The notes: a model not told the origin generated them from the letters alone. A stretch of DNA of 64,000 nucleotides from Anaeramoeba ignava BMAN (GCA_028826165.1 JAPDFW010000001.1:41355-105354), one strand, 5' to 3'; shown: positions 12,485 through 29,069, numbered from the stretch's first letter. A program made the numbers and translations.

Positions 12485-15472
12485 ATGTCAAGAACAGGAA
12501 GAACTGCAGGACCAAGAAGCCAAGAATGGGTACGATTACAACGAAAAATTTTTTCGCGATGGGTTAAACAAAAATTATTAAGAACCAGACCAGAAATCCA
12601 AGTGAACGATGTAGTAGATGATTACAAAGATGGAGTAATGCTATTGAATCTAATCGAAGTATTAAGCGAATCAAAATTTGAAGGGAAATACAATCAACGA
12701 CCCAAAATGTCAGTTCATCGAATAGACAATTTAAACAACGCATTAAAATTCGCATGGAGTAAGGGAGTTGATATGAAGGTGAAACCGTCGGCAGAGCAGC
12801 TAGAAAAGGGGGACCAAAAGGCAGCACTAGCTTTGACTTGGGGAATCATGATGAAATTCATTAAGATTGACGATGGATCGGGCGGAGAAGCCTTGAATGC
12901 AAAGGATGCACTTATGATGTGGTGCAAAAACAAAACCGCAGGATATAAAGGAGTCGAGATTACTGACTTCAAGAAGAGTTTTGCGGACGGATACGCTCTG
13001 TGCGCAATCATCCACAAACACCGTCCAAAATTAATTGATCTTTCCAGTTTGGATCCAAATGATCCAATTAAGAACCTGCAGATTGCCCAGGACGCTGCGG
13101 AGAAGTACTTTGGCCTGGAAAAATACATCACGCCTGATGAGATTAGAAAACTTGATGAGAACTCAATGGTTGTTTATGTCAGTGAATACTACTACGGAAT
13201 TGCCGAGCAAAGAAAACTTGATTTGGCAGCTAGAAGAATTAAAAAGCTAATTGTTTTGACAAAAGAAAATGACAGGCTAAAAACTGAATATAATAAAACC
13301 GCCAAAAATTTCAAAGACACGCTCAAGCGCGTCGAGGTTGTTCTCGAGGACAGAACAATCGACAACACCATGGCGGGTGCAAAGCTGCGTCTGGAGAAGT
13401 TCTACGAGTACAAGACAAAGGAAAAAAGCTCGCTCATTTCGGATCAATTGGATCTTGAGTCAAATTACAACAATTTGGCTATGCGTCTCGCCCATCACAA
13501 AAGACCCGAATTCAAACCCGAGAAAGGGTGCTCCCTCAAAGAGGTTGCCCAGGATATGCTCCATCTCGAGGAGTGCGAGCAAGAGAGGAAAGTGGCTCTT
13601 CATGCTGAGCTCAACCGCCAGCTCAAACTCGTCAACCTTGCGACACAACACGAGTCACGCTTCAACAAACTCTCAGACTACTTCAACGAAAAGCAGGCTT
13701 ATCTTAATCTCAGAGAGGAAATCGACTCCGTTTCTGCCGCTCATTTCCAACTTAGACTCCTCGACCGTTACCAAAAGGAGAATGAAACTATGATCAAAAC
13801 CGGAGTCGCTAATTTGAAGAGTTTGTCCGCTGAATTGAAACAAGAAAAATACGAATACCAGGCCCATATCGAAGACCACGACAAAGATATCGATGCTAAA
13901 TTCAAAAAACTTGATGAGTTGGCTAGGATCAAGAAACCCATTCTTGATGACCATTTGAAACGTGAGGAATTTATCGTTAAAGTCAGACAAATGAATGATG
14001 AGCATAAAGACAAATACAACAAACTCGTCAAATGGTTCCAAATCAAAAATGCTTATTTGCTCATCAAAGAGGAAATTGACTCCGTTACTCTTGCATCCAA
14101 AAACTTGAATATCTTCGGTTCTTACGTCAAGGAATATGAGAAATATAAGGACTATGATCTTGTTGAATTTATCAAATTGGGAAAAGAAATTTTGGCTCAA
14201 GAATACAAAACAGAACATTCTCATTATGTTTATGATATTACTGAATACCAAGGCAAATCATTCAATCAAAACAGATTTGCTGATATCACTAACAGACACG
14301 ACGACATGGATGCTAAATTCAAGCAATTATCAGAATTGGCAAACGAAAAGAAAGGATATCTTGATGAACAGCTGAGACTTGAAACCAAGAAGGAAGAATT
14401 GCGATTGGAATTTGCAAATTTGATTTCGGAATTCACGGCTTATGTCAAATTGGAAATTGAAAATGCAAGTCTTCGTGAGTTTGGATTTACACTTGAAGAA
14501 GTTGAGGCGTACAAGAAAGTGATTGACGAGACTGATAAACAAGTTTTAGGAAATGCAAGCAAGATGAAGGAGTCATGCGAGAAGGTGAAAGTTGAGATGG
14601 ACGAGTACAAAGTGACGAATAATCCGTACACTGGGCTCACAATAAAAGACTCCGCAACCTCCTTCCAGACACTCCAAGACGCACTTTCGGAGCGAACAAA
14701 AGCCTACGAAGCTGAGCTTAAGCGCCAGCGAGAAAACGACGAGTTGTGCAAGAAATTTGCGCAGTTGGCAGATCCGTTCTCGAAATGGATCACTGAACAA
14801 AAAGATCAAATCACAGCTTCAAAGGAGTCGCTTGAAGTGCAGCTTGCGTTTGTGGACAAATGCATCTCGAGCTTGTCGACAGAGCAAGCCAAGTTGCAGC
14901 CCTTGAAGGATCTCCAGGAAAAGATGGACAAAGCAGGAATCCAAAACAACAGACACACTACATTGACATTAAAAGATTTGCTAGTTCAATGGGGACAATA
15001 TGAGAACTTTTTGAAACGCAAGAAGAAGATGCTTGAGGAGGAGATTGAGCACCAGAAACTGCGCGGTATTACTGCCGAGCAGATGCAGGAAATTGAAGAG
15101 AACTTCAAGCAATTTGATTTTGACAATTCAGGCACTATTGATAGAAAAGAGCTTACTGCTTGTCTTTATTCTCTTGGGGAAGAGAGAACCCCAAAGGAGA
15201 TCAATAAAATCATGGAGGAATATGGTGATGGCAAGGATATTTCTTATGAGCGCTTCAAGGATTTCATGATTGTTTTGTTTGGTGATACAGATACTAAAGA
15301 CGAGATTATTAATTCCTTTATTTTGATTAATCGCGGCCACAAAGTTGCTAAGAAAGATCTTATGGAATTAGTTATGGATGACCAAGATATTGAGTATATT
15401 CTCAAAACTGCTCCTCAAGTTGATGAGGGTTATAATTATCATGCTTGGACTGAAGAAGTTTTTTCACGTTGA
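12485..15472 (+). CDS. ACTN: Alpha-actinin (two CH domains, spectrin-repeat rod, EF-hands), intronless, 995 aa
   Basis: QRKIFSRWV and DYKDGVMLLNLIEVLS (CH1); AKDALMMWCKNKTAGY...SFADGYALCAIIH (CH2); helical rod; EF-hand DFDNSGTIDRKE. Confidence 0.95.
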   Translation: MSRTGRTAGPRSQEWVRLQRKIFSRWVKQKLLRTRPEIQVNDVVDDYKDGVMLLNLIEVLSESKFEGKYNQRPKMSVHRIDNLNNALKFAWSKGVDMKVKPSAEQLEKGDQKAALALTWGIMMKFIKIDDGSGGEALNAKDALMMWCKNKTAGYKGVEITDFKKSFADGYALCAIIHKHRPKLIDLSSLDPNDPIKNLQIAQDAAEKYFGLEKYITPDEIRKLDENSMVVYVSEYYYGIAEQRKLDLAARRIKKLIVLTKENDRLKTEYNKTAKNFKDTLKRVEVVLEDRTIDNTMAGAKLRLEKFYEYKTKEKSSLISDQLDLESNYNNLAMRLAHHKRPEFKPEKGCSLKEVAQDMLHLEECEQERKVALHAELNRQLKLVNLATQHESRFNKLSDYFNEKQAYLNLREEIDSVSAAHFQLRLLDRYQKENETMIKTGVANLKSLSAELKQEKYEYQAHIEDHDKDIDAKFKKLDELARIKKPILDDHLKREEFIVKVRQMNDEHKDKYNKLVKWFQIKNAYLLIKEEIDSVTLASKNLNIFGSYVKEYEKYKDYDLVEFIKLGKEILAQEYKTEHSHYVYDITEYQGKSFNQNRFADITNRHDDMDAKFKQLSELANEKKGYLDEQLRLETKKEELRLEFANLISEFTAYVKLEIENASLREFGFTLEEVEAYKKVIDETDKQVLGNASKMKESCEKVKVEMDEYKVTNNPYTGLTIKDSATSFQTLQDALSERTKAYEAELKRQRENDELCKKFAQLADPFSKWITEQKDQITASKESLEVQLAFVDKCISSLSTEQAKLQPLKDLQEKMDKAGIQNNRHTTLTLKDLLVQWGQYENFLKRKKKMLEEEIEHQKLRGITAEQMQEIEENFKQFDFDNSGTIDRKELTACLYSLGEERTPKEINKIMEEYGDGKDISYERFKDFMIVLFGDTDTKDEIINSFILINRGHKVAKKDLMELVMDDQDIEYILKTAPQVDEGYNYHAWTEEVFSR

Positions 15473-19362: not shown

Positions 19363-19436
19363 GCCACCTTAGCTCAGTTTGGCAGAGCGCTTGTCTTGTA
19401 AACAAGAGGTCCCTGGTTCGAGTCCAGAAGGTGGCA
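19363..19436 (+). tRNA. tRNA-Thr (anticodon TGT)
   Basis: Cloverleaf: GCCACCT/AGGTGGC acceptor stem, GCTC/GAGC D-stem, CTTGT-CTTGTAA-ACAAG anticodon arm, GGTTCGAGTCC T-arm; no intron. Confidence 0.95.
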
Positions 19437-19514: not shown

Positions 19515-22500
19515 ATGAAATTAAGAATTCATCAAACAAGAACTCTTTTAAGAAAGAATTGGATTCAATCAAAAAGAAATTTAAAAAGCACTTTGTAAAC
19601 AATTTTTAAAAAGATTTTAATAATATTTCTTTATATTTTTTTGATCAAAATTAAATGAAATTAAATGAAATTAAATGAAATAAATTTTTTTGATACGTAT
19701 CAATTAAATTTTTTTTCTTTATTTGATCATTTAATTACATTTTTAATCAGAAACCATTTTTTTAAATACATCAAATTTTATTAATTTTCACTAATTAAAT
19801 TAATTTGATTTAAACTTATAAATTTTTCATTTTAAATTTTTAAACTTAATTTAGATGCACAATTTTGGTTCCAGTTATTTTTAATGTTCTTCTTCTGATA
19901 TTTGGAGCAATTATTAAAGCATCAAGATTAGATGCTAATAAAGGAAAGTAAGCTAAAAAATTTTAATTTTAATTTTAATTTTAATTTTAATTTCAAAATG
20001 AATTTTAATTTCAATTTCAATTTCAAAATGAATTTCAATTTCAATTTTAATTTCAAATTGAATTTTAATTTCAATTTTAATTTCAAAATGAATTTTAATT
20101 TCAATTTTAATTTTAATTTCAATTTTAATTTCAATTTTAATTTCAAAATGAATTTTAATTTTAATTTTAAATTGAATTTTAATTATAATTTCAAAATGAA
20201 TTTTAATTTTAATTTCAAAATGAATTTTGATTTCAAATTTAATTTTAATTAAAAAAGACAGAAATCCAAAACTTGAACCAATTAATTTCCCAAAATGTGA
20301 TACAGTAAGTTAAATTCAAAATCAAAATTAAAAAATTTTTTTAAATTAAAAAAAAATATTTCTTTATTTACAGATAGCATGTTATGACTTTGTTTACAAT
20401 GAAAAAAACAACACAAAAGTTCAAGAAATTGTTCAAAAAGTATTTTCGTTTATTTAAAACTAAAAAAAAGACAATATAATTTAAAAAAAAAATCAATTTA
20501 AAGATTTGTGATAATGAAGGAATAAATAAAGCAACTAGTACTTTGGGTTTTGATACAGCGAATGAAGTAGATTATTATCTCTCAAATAATACCAACAAAA
20601 CTTATGTTGGATATATGTTTTTACTACCAAATGGATCTTATAACGATATACCAGATACAACAAATGTAATCATTTTTTTTTAGGAAAAAAATAAAAAGAA
20701 GATCCAAAGAAGAATAAAAAAAAATGAAACAAAACAAAAAGAAGAAGTTATCAAAACTTGAACTAACCAAAAAAAAATAACAAAAAATTTGAACTAATCA
20801 AAAATAAAAAGTTCTCAGTAGTAGTGAATCAATCAACCATATATCAATCTACAGGACTTGATGATTTTTTGGATGTTTTTGTTCCTGCTCAATATGCTTT
20901 ACAGAAAGCCTTGTTTGAAGTTCTTCAAAATAAATCAATGAGTTTTGATGTGACGACAATGAAATATCCTCATCCTCAATTAACACCTACAGATGCTATT
21001 CCTATAATGGCTCCTACTTTTTATTTTTGGTCAGCTTTGTTTCAGTTGGTTATTCAGATGACACAAATTGTTCAAGAAAAAGAATATCGGCAAAGATTTG
21101 GGATGATTGTTATGGGGTTGAAGGGTAGTTTTATTAAAATCCATTTTTAAATTAAATTTAAAATTGAAATTCATTTATAAATTAAAATCCATTTATAAAT
21201 TAAAATTAAAATTGAAATCAAAATCAAAATCAAAATTGAAATTAAAATCAAAATCAAAATCAAATTTAAATTAAAATTAAAATTAAAATTAAAATTAAAA
21301 TTAAAATTATAATTAAAATCAAAATTAAAATTAAAATCAAAATTAAAATCAAAATTAAAATTAAAATCAAATTTAAAATTAAAATTAAAATTAAAATTAA
21401 AATTAAAATTCAAATCAAAATTGAAATTAAAATCAAAATTAAAATTAAAATTAAAATTCAAATTGAAATTAAAATTAAAATTAAAATTAAAATTAAAATT
21501 AAAATCAAATTTAAAATTAAAATTAAAATTAAAATTAAAATTCATTTATAAAATTTAATAAAAAAGGTACATCTTATTGGATATCATGGTTCATCGCTAA
21601 CTTCATCACAATTGTGATCTCAATATTCTTACAAATCGCAACTGGAGCAATGTTTCAATTTGAATTCTTTTTAGAAAACGCATTTGGAACATATTTCTTT
21701 TTATTTTTCCTTTTTGGATTAACAACGATCTCATTAGCATTTTTTTTCACTTCAATTCTTGGAAAAACAAAAACAACAACAACAGTAGGATTTGTGATGT
21801 TTTTCTTTTTCACTATACTAAACGCAATAACAACGAACGTAATCTTCCAATCGAGCGTACCAAGCTGGGTGCGTACTATACTCTCTTTTCTTCCGCCAGT
21901 GGTTTTCTCGAAGGGAGTGTTTGATCTCGCGGATAAAACTTCAGCTCCGCAATTTCACGGAATCAGATGGGCCGATCGCGGGCACAACGCAAGTATGTAC
22001 TCGCTTACGACAATATACAACTGGCTCATCTTGGATTTCGTCATCTTCTTTGTTCTCGCGCTTTATCTGGACAACGTCGTTCCCTCTTCTTCAGGAATAG
22101 CAAGACATCCGTTATTTTTCCTGCAGAAATCTTATTGGACTGGAAAATATAAGAAAAAAAAACAAACACAAATCTCTTCAGAAACAGACAATTTGCTCGA
22201 TGCAGATGTTCTCCAGGAAAAGAAGATGATTGCAGACGGCGAGTCTCCAGAGACAACCGCAGTCTCCATTGTCAATCTGACCAAAGTGTTCAAAAAAACA
22301 CTTTTCCAAAAAAAAACCGATTTCAAAGCAGTTGATTCTCTGTTCCTAACGCTGCGCAACGGTGAGCTACTCGGCTTGCTCGGACCCAACGGATCGGGCA
22401 AATGCCTTGGTTTGGGAACGCCTGTCATAAAGTACAACGGCGATGTTGTTCCCGTGGAAACAATCTCGATCGGCGATGTTCTTCTTGGCGACGATTCTTC

Positions 22501-25291
22501 TCCTCGTCGTGTCCTTGCAACAACACGAGGCACAGGCCCTCTCTTTAATATCACTCCCCTCAAAAACCCCAACTTTGTTCTTCCGTATACCGTCAACGAT
22601 AAGCATATTCTTTCTCTCAAACTCGTCCAAAATATCTCCTACACTTATGATCCCCTCTCTTCTTCCGTTACTGTCCGTTGGATCCAAAACCATACTCTTA
22701 TGTCTCGCATATTCCCCAATGTCTCTTCTTCTTATCTTCCATTCTCAACCCCTCATATTGCTAAATTCATCCGCAAGCTCAGAAAATCTGATAAAATCAA
22801 CCATTGTGGCGATGTTGTCGATATTTCCGTTACAGATTTCATCCAAAAACCTCATGAGTGGAAATCAATGTACCACGGATACAAAGTCGGCGCCTCTTTC
22901 GCCAAGCAACAATCCTCTCCCAAAAAGGGCACTCTCCATCATCTTGGTGTTGTTCTCGGCAATTTCATCCGCGATCATCGAAACTCCCAAAATTTCTCCT
23001 CAATTTCCTCGCAAACACATCCCCAACTCGCACAGCTTCTCTCAGCAATCTCCCCGCAAGGCATCCCCAACATAGACAATCTCAGAAAAATTGCGCTTAC
23101 TGACGAGCAAGATCGCCGCGAATTCCTATCTGCAGTTGTTACCAGCGCAGGTTCTGTGATTTCCAACAAAGAAAACATTGCTGAAATTGATTGCGGAAAT
23201 CAAAAAGAGATCAGAAACAGTCTCGAGTTCATTGCTCGCTCTTTGGGTCTTGCATTTGTCAGTGTTCCCAATCAAAAACAACACCGCGAAACAATAAGAA
23301 TTTTTGGATCACGAATTGAGAACTTTTGGATCAATAACGGAAAAAAACGTCAAAAAACAAACGAAAAAGCAAAAACAAGAAAATCAATGGAAGAAGAGCA
23401 TCTCAGCTGCGAAATACGTGTTGAGCCCGCAGGAATGGGAGAGTACTATGGATTTGAGATCGATGGCAATGGACGGTTTCTTCTTGGCGATTTCACAGTC
23501 ACACACAACTCAACAACAATCAACATGCTGATCGGGTTATTTCGACCCACAAGTGGAGATGCGTTTATTCTCGGGCGTTCCATCATCACAGATATCGATG
23601 CTATTCGTCGGCAGCTCGGTGTTTGTCCGCAGCACGATATCTTGTGGGATGAGCTTACTGCGAAGGAGCATTTGGAGTTATTTGCAAAACTCAAAAATAT
23701 GAAAAGCAAAGAAATCAAAGATGAAATTTCTCAAAGACTCGAAGAAGTAGAGCTTTCTGATGTTGCTAATTTAAGAGTAGGAGCTTTTTCTGGTGGAATG
23801 AAACGTCGTTTATCTCTTGCTATTGCTTTGACTGGCTCTCCTAAGATTTGTTTGTTTGATGAATGCACAACTGGTTTGGATCCTGTTGCTAGAAGACAAG
23901 TTTGGAATATTATTCAGAAAGCGAAGAAGGATCGTGTTATTTTGTTAACAACTCACTGTAAATCCAAAACCAATTTCAATTTAAAATTCATTTCAATTTA
24001 AAATTCAATTTGAAATTAAAATCAAAATTCATTTCGAAATTCAATTTGAAATCAAAATTCAATTTGAAATTAAAATTCAATTTGAAATTAAAATCAAAAT
24101 TCAATTTAAAATTCAAATTGAAATTAAAATTCAATTTGAAATTAAAATTCAAAAATTTAAATTTAAAATTAAAATTCAATTTGAAATTAAATTTAAAATT
24201 TAATTTGAAATCAAAATTTGAAATTAAAATCAAAATTAAAATTCAATTTGAAATTAAAATTAAAAATTCAATTTAAAATTCAATTTAAAAATCAAAATTC
24301 AATTTAAAATCAAAATTCAATTTGAAATCAAAATTCAATTTGAAATTAAAATTCAATTTGAAATTAAAATCAAAATTCAATTTAAAATCAAAATCAAAAT
24401 CAAAATCAAAATTCAATTTGAAATTGAAATTAAAATTCATTTCGAAATTCATTTTGAAATTAAAATTAAAATTCAATTTGAAATTGAAATTAAAATTAAA
24501 ATTCATTTCGAAATTCATTTTGAAATTAAAATTAAAATTCAATTTGAAATTGAAATTAAAATTAAAATTCATTTCGAAATTCATTTTGAAAATTAAAATT
24601 AGCAATGGAAGAAGCAGATATCCTTTCAGATAGAATCGCTATTCTTGCAGCTGGAAAACTTCGTTGTTTAGGAACATCTCTTCATTTAAAAAACAAATTT
24701 GGAGCTGGATATAGAATTAATATTATTATCGAAGAAGAATCAAATATTCAACCATTACGTACAGGAATTCTTAAACAATTTCCCGATTTCCAAATTTATA
24801 ATGAAACTCAATCAACAATTACAATCACAGTTCAAAGACATTTGAATCAAAAACTTCCTTCATTCTTTCGTTTTTTGGATGATAATCGCGAAAATTTCAA
24901 AATTAAAGATTTTGCAGTTAGTTTAACAACACTTGAAGAAGTATTCTTGAATATTGCTAATCAAGCTCAAAGAGAACAAGCACAAAAATTAAAAGAACAA
25001 TTAGGAAGTAATTATTAGAAAACTCAAAAAAAAATTTTTTTTGCTAGTTCAAATTTATTTACTTTTTTTTTCTTTTAATTTATATTCTTTTTTTTAGTTA
25101 ATAATTTAATGGGACAAACTTTAACTGATCCTTTATTAATGTCTCAAGAAGAAATGAAATTTTTGGAACATTCTCAACAAAAACCTATCGATAATCAATA
25201 TGTTCCTTATCAAAAACAAGGACAATTTCATCCTCCAAAAGATAAAAGTAGTGATCCTTTAAGTTTATCTGATGATGATGATGATAATTAA
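19515..25291 (+). CDS. ABCA: Half-size ABCA-family transporter (TMD-NBD) containing an intein; multi-exon
   Basis: N-terminus HQTRTLLRKNWIQSKR; IVQEKE..MGLK|GTSYWISW; LALYLDNVVP; Walker A GPNGSGK[intein]STT; LGVCPQHDILWDELT; signature FSGGMKRRLS; Walker B CLFDECTTGLDP; LLTTH|SMEEAD (intron 23958-24602); TTLEEVFL. Last exon 25098-25291. Confidence 0.92.
22403..23509 (+). mobile_element. Intein (369 aa) with a degenerate LAGLIDADG homing-endonuclease domain
   Basis: Block A C1-LGLGTPVIKYNG; block B TVNDKHILSL; block F GEYYGFEIDGNGRFLLGDF; block G TVTHN followed by Ser+1. Removing it restores GPNGSGK-STT. Confidence 0.96.
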
Positions 25292-25657: not shown

Positions 25658-28600
25658 ATGTTTTCACGTTTTATTGAACCAAGTCAAAAAGTTTTAAAAA
25701 ATTTAGCGTTTCAAACTGTTCAAAATTTTTCAAGAACATTAACAGTAAGAAATCATTTGAAATATTTCAAAAATTAATTATAAAATTGATTATAATATTA
25801 AATATAAAATTGAATATAATATTAATTATAAAATTAAATATAATATTAATTATAAAATTAAATATAAAATTAAATATAATATTAAATATAATATTAAATA
25901 TAAAATTAATTATAATATTAAATATAAAATTAATTATAATATTAAATATAAAATTGATTATAATATTGATTATAATATTAAATATAATATTAAATATAAT
26001 ATTAATTATAAAATTAAATATAATATTAAATATAATATTAAAATTAAATATAATATTAAATATAATATTAATTATAAAATTAAATATAATATTAATTATA
26101 ATATTAAATATAATATTAAATATAATATTAAATATAATATTAAATATAATTATTAATATTAAATATAAAATTAAATATAATATTAATTATAATATTAATT
26201 ATAAAATTAAATATAAAATTAAATATAAAAATTAATTATAATATTAAATATAATATTAATTATAAAATTAAATATAAAATTAATTATAATATTAAATATA
26301 AAATTAAATATAAAATTAAATATATAATATTAAATATAAAATTATTAATATAAAATAAATTAAATTAAAATTAAAATATAAAAATTAAATATAAAATTAA
26401 ATATAATATTAAATATAAAATTAAATATAATATTAATTATAAAATTAAATATAATATTAAATATAAAATTAAATATAATATTAATTATAATATTAATTAT
26501 AATAATAATTATAAATATTAATTATAATATTAATTATAATATTAAATATAATATTAAATATAATATTAATTATAAAATTAAATATAATATTAATTATAAT
26601 ATTAAATATAAAATTAAATATAATATTAAATATAAAATTAAATATAATATTAAATATAATATTAAATATAATATTAATTATAATATTAATTATAATATTA
26701 ATTATAATATTAAATATAAAATAAATTAAATATAATATTAAATATAATATTAAATATAATATTAAATATAATATTAATTATATAATATTAATTATAATAT
26801 TAATTATAATATTAAATATAATATTAATTATAATATTAAATATAATATATTAATAATAATAATAAATATAATTAATTATAATATTAATTATAATATTAAT
26901 TATAATATTAAATATAATATTAAAATATAAATTAAATATATTAAAATAAATATTAAATATAATATTAAATATAATATTAAATATAATATTAAATATAATA
27001 TTAATTACAATATTAAATATAAAATTAAATATAAATATTAATTATAATATTAAATATAATATTAAATATAATATTAAATATAATATTAAATATAATATTA
27101 AATATAATATTAAATATAATAATATAATAAAATTAAATATAATATTAATTATAAAATTAAATATAATATTAAATATAAAATTAAATATAAATTTATAATA
27201 TTAAATATAAAATTAAATATAATATTAAATATAAAATTAATATTAAATATAATATTAATTATAATATTAAATATAATATTAATTATAAAATTAAATATAA
27301 AATTAATTATAAAATAATATAAAATTAATTATAAAATTAAATATAATATTAAATATAATATTAAATATAAAATTAAATATAAAAATAAATAAATTAAAAT
27401 TAAATATAATATTAAAATATAATATTAATTATAATATTAAATATAAAATTAATTATAAAATTAATTATAATATTAAATACAAAATTAATTATAATATTAA
27501 TTATATTAATTATAATATTAAATATAATATTAAATATAATATTAAATATAATATTAAATATAATATTAAATATAATATTAATTATAATATTAAATAAATT
27601 AATTATAATATTAATTATAATACTAAATATAAAATTAATTACAATATTAAATATAATATTAATTACAATATTAAATATAATATTAAATATAATATTAAAT
27701 ATAAAATTAAATATAATATTAAATATAATATTAATTATAATATTAAATATAATATTAATTATAATATTAAATATAAAATTAAATATAATATTAATTATAA
27801 TATTATTTATAATATTAATTATAAAATTAAATATAAAATATTAAATATAAATATTTAAAATATTAAATAAAATTAATTAAAATATTAAATATAAATATTT
27901 AAAAGACAAACAACACTTACGATGCAATTGTAATTGGAGCAGGATCTATCGGACTCCAACAGCAATGGAACTCCAAGAAAGTGGAATGAAAGTAGTAGTT
28001 CTAGATCGTAAACCATCACCAGGACAAGGAGATAACAAATGTGCTATTGGAGGGATTCGCGCAACACACTCCAATGCATCAAAAATTCTAGCAGGATTGC
28101 GTTCACTTGAGATTTTCTCAACATGGAAAGAAAAACACGGATTTGATATCGAATGGAAAAAGGGAGGCTACTTGTTCCCAGTGTATCAGAGAAGTGGATG
28201 AAGAAGCACTTAAATCGTTAATCCCTTATCAACGATCATTCGGAATGGAAATCGGTTTTGTTGATGCAGATCGTGTCAAACAACTCGTTCCTGGAATTAA
28301 TACAGATAGTTTGCGAGGTGGGATTTGGTCGCCAAATGATGGCTCAGCTTCCCCTTTATTATCTGCACTTGCATTTTATAGATACGCAAAGGAACTCGGT
28401 GCAGATTTCCATTTCAAAGAAGAAGCACAAGAAATACTCAAAGATTCTCACGGAAAAGTATCTGGCGTTAAAACCGAAAAAAGCACTTTCCACGCTCCTA
28501 TTGTGATTGATGCTGCTGGTGCTTATTCAACAAAACTCATGAAATCACTAAGACTCCAAGTTCCTGTCACTCCAGACTCTCATGAAGCAGGAATCACAGA

Positions 28601-29069
28601 GCCTACAGAGCATTTCTTCTCTCCAATGGTCGTCGATATGAGACCTAGTACAGGATCCAAAAATTATTACTTCTACCAAAACTCTCATGGCCAGATTGTG
28701 TTCTGTATCACTCCAGACCCAGTTATTCCAGGAACTGACCGCGAAGAAACTTCCGTTTTCCTTCCACAAGTCTCGAAACGTATGATATCAATCCTCCCCC
28801 GTTTACAGAACGTCAGGGTCAGACGTACTTGGCGTGGTCTTTACCCAATGACTCCAGATGGCAATCCTCTTCTTGGCTGGAATCGTAATCTTCCAGGCCT
28901 ATTTACTGCAACTGGTATGTGTGGTCAGGGATTCATGCTTGGTCCTGGATATGCAAAGACAATCCGCAATTCAATTACTAACAATCTCGATGATAATGAT
29001 AAAACTATCCTCAAATTTGTTGATCCTCACAGATCTTTTGCTGATCAAAAAAAGGAAGTTTTCAAATAG
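25658..29069 (+). CDS. FAD-dependent oxidoreductase (DAO family; sarcosine oxidase beta / proline dehydrogenase beta-like) with a putative mitochondrion/hydrogenosome presequence
   Basis: Exon 1 (25658-25744) MFSRFIEPSQKVLKNLAFQTVQNFSRTLT; intron 25745-27905; exon 2 YDAIVIGAGSIG (Rossmann fold), VIDAAGAYS, RTWRGLYPMTPDGNPLLG, GMCGQGFMLGP. Frameshifts near 27955 and 28190. Confidence 0.88.
25745..27905. repeat. 2.2-kb intron filled with a 12-bp A/T repeat (ATTAAATATAAT / ATTAATTATAAT)
   Basis: GTAAGA...AAAAG-bounded; nearly pure A/T tandem repeat. Confidence 0.9.

Follow-up and report, generated by a model that had tools for sequence, protein, structure and literature searches.

A class-1 VMA-type intein with a degenerate endonuclease interrupts Walker A in an Anaeramoeba ignava half-size ABCA transporter

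A 64,000-nucleotide stretch of DNA from Anaeramoeba ignava BMAN (GCA_028826165.1 JAPDFW010000001.1:41355-105354; hereafter the window) contains an ABCA transporter gene whose Walker A motif is interrupted by an intein. Taken as a whole, the evidence is very probably best explained by a class-1 intein of VMA/PI-SceI type that is selfish, has become immobile and is lodged in the Walker A loop of its host, a half-size ABCA. The insert, on the plus strand at 22403-23509, consists of 1107 nucleotides, or 369 codons, in frame and free of stops. It lies between the Walker A Lys and Ser: GPNGSGK (22382-22402) ends the N-extein and STTINML follows the insert. The Pfam Hom_end_hint profile matched residues 1-368 with 49.7 bits against a cut-off of 32.1 (E 6e-13); a search of NCBIfam gave no match to the intein. 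The ABC_tran match of the host picks up again at profile position 25, directly after the insert. In A. flamelloides and other ABCAs the site is empty and reads GK-TTT, which identifies the segment as an in-frame insertion. The N-terminal splicing region (22403-22618) holds Cys1 of block A at 22403 and Asn65-x-x-His68 of block B at 22595-22606, and the C-terminal splicing region (23402-23509) holds Asp354 of block F and His368-Asn369 of block G at 23504-23509. The next residue, Ser+1 (23510-23512), is by established knowledge both the splicing nucleophile and the Mg-binding residue of Walker A. Cys1, Asn65, His68, Asp354, His368, Asn369 and Ser+1 are invariant across ten aligned relatives. An earlier note, made from the sequence alone, had called a class-1 intein of VMA-type resemblance at this position. 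Profile, alignment and model confirm at the level of sequence that 22403-23509 is a genuine class-1 intein, and it is predicted to splice.

The fold agrees with this assignment. An AlphaFold model of the intein (mean predicted local distance difference test score 76) found its closest PDB match in the yeast VMA1 intein PI-SceI (E 7e-21, template modelling score about 0.7), with Prp8 inteins next. The window intein shares with PI-SceI the class-1 residues, the two-domain Hint and LAGLIDADG fold and insertion in a P-loop. It differs from PI-SceI in sequence (about 17% identity), in the loss of its endonuclease residues, and in an insert in the Hint domain that is AP2-like in its relatives. A spliceosomal intron is excluded by the absence of GT-AG ends, the open reading frame and the exon-like base composition: the insert runs TGC...AAC and has a GC content of 44%, versus 6-12% in the flanking introns. 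The segment is coding in the GenBank gene model. Five sequencing runs, none of them on record as RNA, contain 85-97% of the sampled exon words. The P-loop inteins of Anaeramoeba cluster 1 (PMC10710043) differ in being of class 3, without an N-terminal nucleophile and with a Cys in block F; that class is excluded here by the presence of Cys1 and of Asp354 in block F. It is highly improbable that the insert has lost splicing altogether or only cleaves, and that the gene is an incipient pseudogene. The long terminal branch of the intein and an assembly frameshift in its sister copy (see below) would suit such decay, but the reading frame is intact with every catalytic residue present, the splicing blocks are strongly conserved, Walker B, the signature and the H-loop of the host ATPase domain are intact, and other small indels occur in the same assembly.

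The host gene was mapped from GenBank KAJ5080784.1 to 19515-25291 (plus strand), with nine exons at approximately 19515-19595, 19856-19948, 20263-20304, 20374-20439, 20504-20665, 20812-21126, 21569-23956, 24605-25006 and 25100-25288. The precursor has 1248 residues, and 879 with the intein taken out. It carries one ABC2_membrane_3 domain, one ABC ATPase domain (Walker A, signature, Walker B and H-loop) and R1, which makes it a half-size ABCA, and in a tree of exteins it groups with plant and amoebozoan half-size ABCAs. A contaminant or viral contig was ruled out by the intron-rich gene, by eukaryotic neighbours (alpha-actinin and others) and by the A. ignava GenBank record. Since the intein sits in the cytosolic ATPase domain, C-terminal to the membrane segments, a polytopic membrane protein should pose no special obstacle to splicing.

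Two results go beyond the earlier note: the endonuclease is degenerate, and a second ABCA gene carries an intein. The LAGLIDADG region (22898-23401) of the window intein has Asn187 in place of the block C Asp and Ala249 in place of the block E Asp, positions at which relatives read WLGDG and LDSDG, and its block D motif is lost. The Pfam Hom_end match is weak (17.7 bits, below cut-off). Unlike the window intein, most public relatives keep both catalytic acidic residues (113 of 158 inteins); neither ABCA copy does. Because both of these residues, which mark an active LAGLIDADG enzyme in blocks C and E, have been lost, the window intein is probably immobile. Comparison with the paralogous intein showed identities of 58% in the N-terminal and 69% in the C-terminal splicing region versus 23% in the endonuclease region, the pattern expected if splicing is still needed and homing is not.

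This paralog lies in the second A. ignava ABCA gene (G000:C126, about 867900-870200, minus strand), for which protein database searches found no annotated protein. Its related intein, at the same site (C126:868360-869371; L061), is 1012 nucleotides long, with a frameshift near C126:868800 that may stem from an error of assembly, since a window gene at 27903-29069 shows two similar slips. Intein-free ABCA relatives exist as well. The extein tree joins the two A. ignava ABCA genes as sisters (100/99) beside a clade of four A. flamelloides proteins, all four of which have the empty GK-TTT site, and a third A. ignava ABCA (L036) is intein-free. The two ABCA inteins are likewise sisters in the intein tree (99/95). 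The simplest reading of these sequences is a single insertion in the A. ignava line with gene duplication after it. Separate invasions of the two ABCA genes are not needed, exteins and inteins both being sisters. Within Walker A, spliceosomal introns were seen in intein-free ABC genes of A. ignava, namely in the second ATPase domain of ABCC genes (L063-L065, L067, L069), in ABCG-like genes (L075-L078, L080) and in the third ABCA. They lie 5 nucleotides before the intein site in two families and about 15 nucleotides before it in the third ABCA. A rough chance estimate for this placement, subject to selection bias, is 0.0003-0.002 under assumed intron densities. These introns fit the published intron-barrier idea, according to which introns block homing.

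The chemistry of class-1 inteins (N-S shift, transesterification, Asn cyclisation, O-N shift) is established. By analogy with it, the ABCA precursor would be translated with the intein inside its cytosolic ATPase domain, and Cys1 would undergo an N-S acyl shift at its bond to the Walker A Lys. Ser+1 would then take over the N-extein by transesterification, Asn369 would cyclise with the assistance of His368, and a final O-N shift would restore GSGK-STT, in a reaction that we envisage as constitutive. Because 369 residues separate Lys from Ser of Walker A in the sequence of the precursor, the unspliced protein would be unable to bind ATP properly; splicing would therefore be obligatory, not regulatory. 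The earlier note had proposed that splicing could gate transport, and we found nothing in support of this. In its fullest form the idea is that of a domesticated conditional switch, in which redox-, metal- or stress-dependent splicing gates ATP binding and transport. The split Walker A motif should indeed leave the precursor inactive, the intein was kept in both paralogs after endonuclease decay, and conditional splicing has been reported for other inteins (PMC10710043). Retention is expected anyway, however, exact loss being difficult; the same intein family occupies many unrelated P-loops of the genome, the A. flamelloides co-orthologs function without an intein, and no allele-specific feature indicative of sensing was seen. 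We thus regard a switch as very unlikely. If it did exist, it would be the first post-translational control by an intein of a membrane transporter, here a lipid exporter, in a eukaryote.

The window intein belongs to a large family, with 6502 representatives at E 0.001, that shows a preference for P-loops: of the 180 public relatives extracted, 157 are inserted between GK (or RK) and S/T. The A. ignava genome (42.8 Mb, 147 contigs) gave 41 Hom_end_hint matches, and about 29 of its inteins were compared. The 85-row intein tree is a quick version. Reading the hosts from flanking motifs, we found that inteins of this family interrupt Walker A in three SMC proteins, Lon, dynein, RecQ, translation GTPases and others. 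The earlier note had considered an ABC exporter an atypical host. An ABCA is indeed the host, and a less atypical one than supposed: besides the P-loop proteins just named, the same family occupies Walker A of two ABC ATPases on phage-like contigs. The tree places the window intein together with Prp8 inteins from the A. ignava genome. In a published intein network, cluster 15 comprises 28 sites in 24 A. ignava proteins and has Prp8, VMA and viral members (PMC10710043); membership of the window intein in this cluster is suggested by the tree grouping. The Prp8-f site AKWK/TAEE of PMC10710043 is also present in the genome. Elsewhere in the genome, the intein of an A. ignava AAA ATPase (L013; G000:C46, about 651330-652350) is sister (100/99), on short branches, to the RFC intein P0227 (L085) of a virus-like contig, and is probably a more recent acquisition. 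Three phosphatase-like genes (L010, L026, L029) carry sister inteins at VAVH-CKAG, a position that would make the catalytic Cys the +1 nucleophile.

The viral affinity of the window intein, also anticipated in the earlier note, is upheld by structure and by a shared insert. When its structure was compared with BFVD, the best viral matches (E 1e-29 to 1e-26) were giant-virus inteins, in Catovirus RFC, the Marseillevirus LCMAC101 packaging ATPase, the Pithovirus LCPAC304 AAA ATPase and a Moumouvirus MutS-like protein. The hosts of these P-loop inteins of Nucleocytoviricota are enzymes of DNA and nucleotides. Window and giant-virus inteins also have in common an insert in the Hint domain. In the window intein this insert comprises about 67 residues after block B (22619-22819), forming three strands and a helix in the model, and appears to be a decayed version of the AP2-like insert found in inteins of giant-virus type. 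A profile built from the long inserts of public relatives matches it (E 1.5e-6). Six of 21 relatives' inserts matched Pfam AP2 (PF00847) itself, under its cut-off (best E 6e-5), and the profile of these inserts matched a Plasmodium AP2 structure (6sy0; E 2e-9); the window insert has AP2-type secondary structure yet no direct Pfam AP2 match. The insert is also seen in P0001, P0006, P0200, P0204 and others (alignment A2), and two metagenomic relatives that possess it adjoin viral-type RNA polymerase genes. It presumably occupies the location at which PI-SceI has its DNA recognition region. The AP2-like insert marks a giant-virus-type subfamily of inteins. A literature search of incomplete coverage found no paper on an AP2 domain in an intein.

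In the history that we infer, an endonuclease-active intein of this P-loop-preferring family, common in giant viruses, would have entered the ABCA site once, in the A. ignava line, either from a virus or via another P-loop gene of the same genome. Gene duplication and endonuclease decay would have followed, and the intein would persist because only an exact deletion spares the P-loop. As to the second route, a jump from an SMC gene of the genome, which carries a related intein in a P-loop of identical motif (GPNGSGK-S), is a tentative possibility that we consider doubtful on balance. The SMC1-like intein at C82 is the genome's best scorer after the paralog, the bases upstream of the two sites match at 18 of 24 positions, and SMC and ABCA inteins have the AP2-like insert in common. 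However, the downstream bases match at only 6 of 24 positions, no supported branch unites the SMC and ABCA inteins, and the Lon inteins score almost as high.

Another conceivable source is the ABC family itself. In the ABC ATPases P0017 and P0021, on phage-like metagenome contigs, a related intein interrupts Walker A at the same position, between GK and S/T, so that the ABCA intein could have arrived by allelic homing from phage-like or bacterial ABC ATPases instead of from the giant-virus-type pool. These two proteins resemble the window gene in having an intein of the same family at the same site of an ABC ATPase; in contrast to it, they are stand-alone, prokaryote-type ATPases whose inteins have intact endonuclease motifs and no AP2-like insert. 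An approximately unbiased test did not reject a joint clade of the four ABC inteins (p 0.146). Nevertheless, the two phage-like inteins lack the insert common to the window intein and those of giant-virus type, group with other insert-free inteins in both trees, and fall outside the top 30 scorers. Such a donor is therefore unlikely, and the sequences make it likely that the phage-like ABC ATPase inteins represent a separate invasion. At L031:5001-6872 and L032:5001-6833, near an OmpA-domain gene on phage-like metagenome contigs, we observed stand-alone ABC ATPases whose Walker A holds a homing intein that looks intact.

Several considerations weigh against the explanation that we prefer, a selfish and now immobile intein of giant-virus type that entered the ABCA gene once. 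Splicing of this allele is a prediction from sequence and model, and the structure model was itself made from an alignment of the same relatives and is biased towards their fold. Support along the backbone of the intein tree is poor and the branches of the Anaeramoeba inteins are long, which makes any immediate donor tentative. Finally, counting on the tree does not separate a gain in A. ignava from a precise loss in A. flamelloides.

The ABCA intein is already known. Searching with the exon retrieved KAJ5080784.1 (UniProt A0A9Q0RI37; 1248 residues), 100% identical over the exon searched and named in GenBank 'intein-containing abc transporter a family member 1-related precursor [Anaeramoeba ignava]'; the novelty that the earlier note had left open is thereby removed. 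Its statement that Anaeramoeba is unusually rich in inteins agrees with the literature. For A. ignava BMAN, Gallot-Lavallee et al. 2023 (PMC10710043) count 103 inteins, report 18 novel host families and links to viruses, and describe homing between P-loops of unrelated proteins. ABC transporters are absent from the main text of that paper, and the GenBank name suggests that the ABCA intein is among those it lists. The main texts of earlier prokaryotic and eukaryotic intein surveys mention no ABC hosts, and our literature search, whose coverage was incomplete, found no relevant paper on an intein in an ABC transporter. Neither the dead endonuclease nor the insert nor the second copy is apparent from the name of the KAJ5080784.1 record. 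What is added beyond the annotation is the loss of the endonuclease, the second copy with empty co-orthologs, the P-loop-preferring family with its AP2-like insert, and the inteins of phage-like ABC ATPases. These additions are modest and of use to intein specialists, offering a datable history of one insertion, gene duplication and endonuclease decay. They also indicate that ABC ATPases were probably invaded a second time, in phage-like contigs. The ABCA intein itself, although already annotated, is a clear case of an intein family with a preference for P-loops that has come to occupy a membrane transporter, in the eukaryote richest in inteins so far known.

Other features of the window were noted. 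The alpha-actinin-like gene (12485-15472) is without introns and encodes 995 residues with CH, spectrin and EF-hand domains. The gene at 27903-29069 encodes an FAD-dependent oxidoreductase (Pfam DAO) and has two apparent frameshifts, near 27950 and 28190, which are either assembly slips or signs of a pseudogene. Just upstream of the ABCA gene, at about 19363-19436, a tRNA-like gene (Thr) was recognised by eye, and short copies of its 5' end, likewise seen by eye, lie in an upstream AT-rich repeat array at about 16637, 18838 and 19128.

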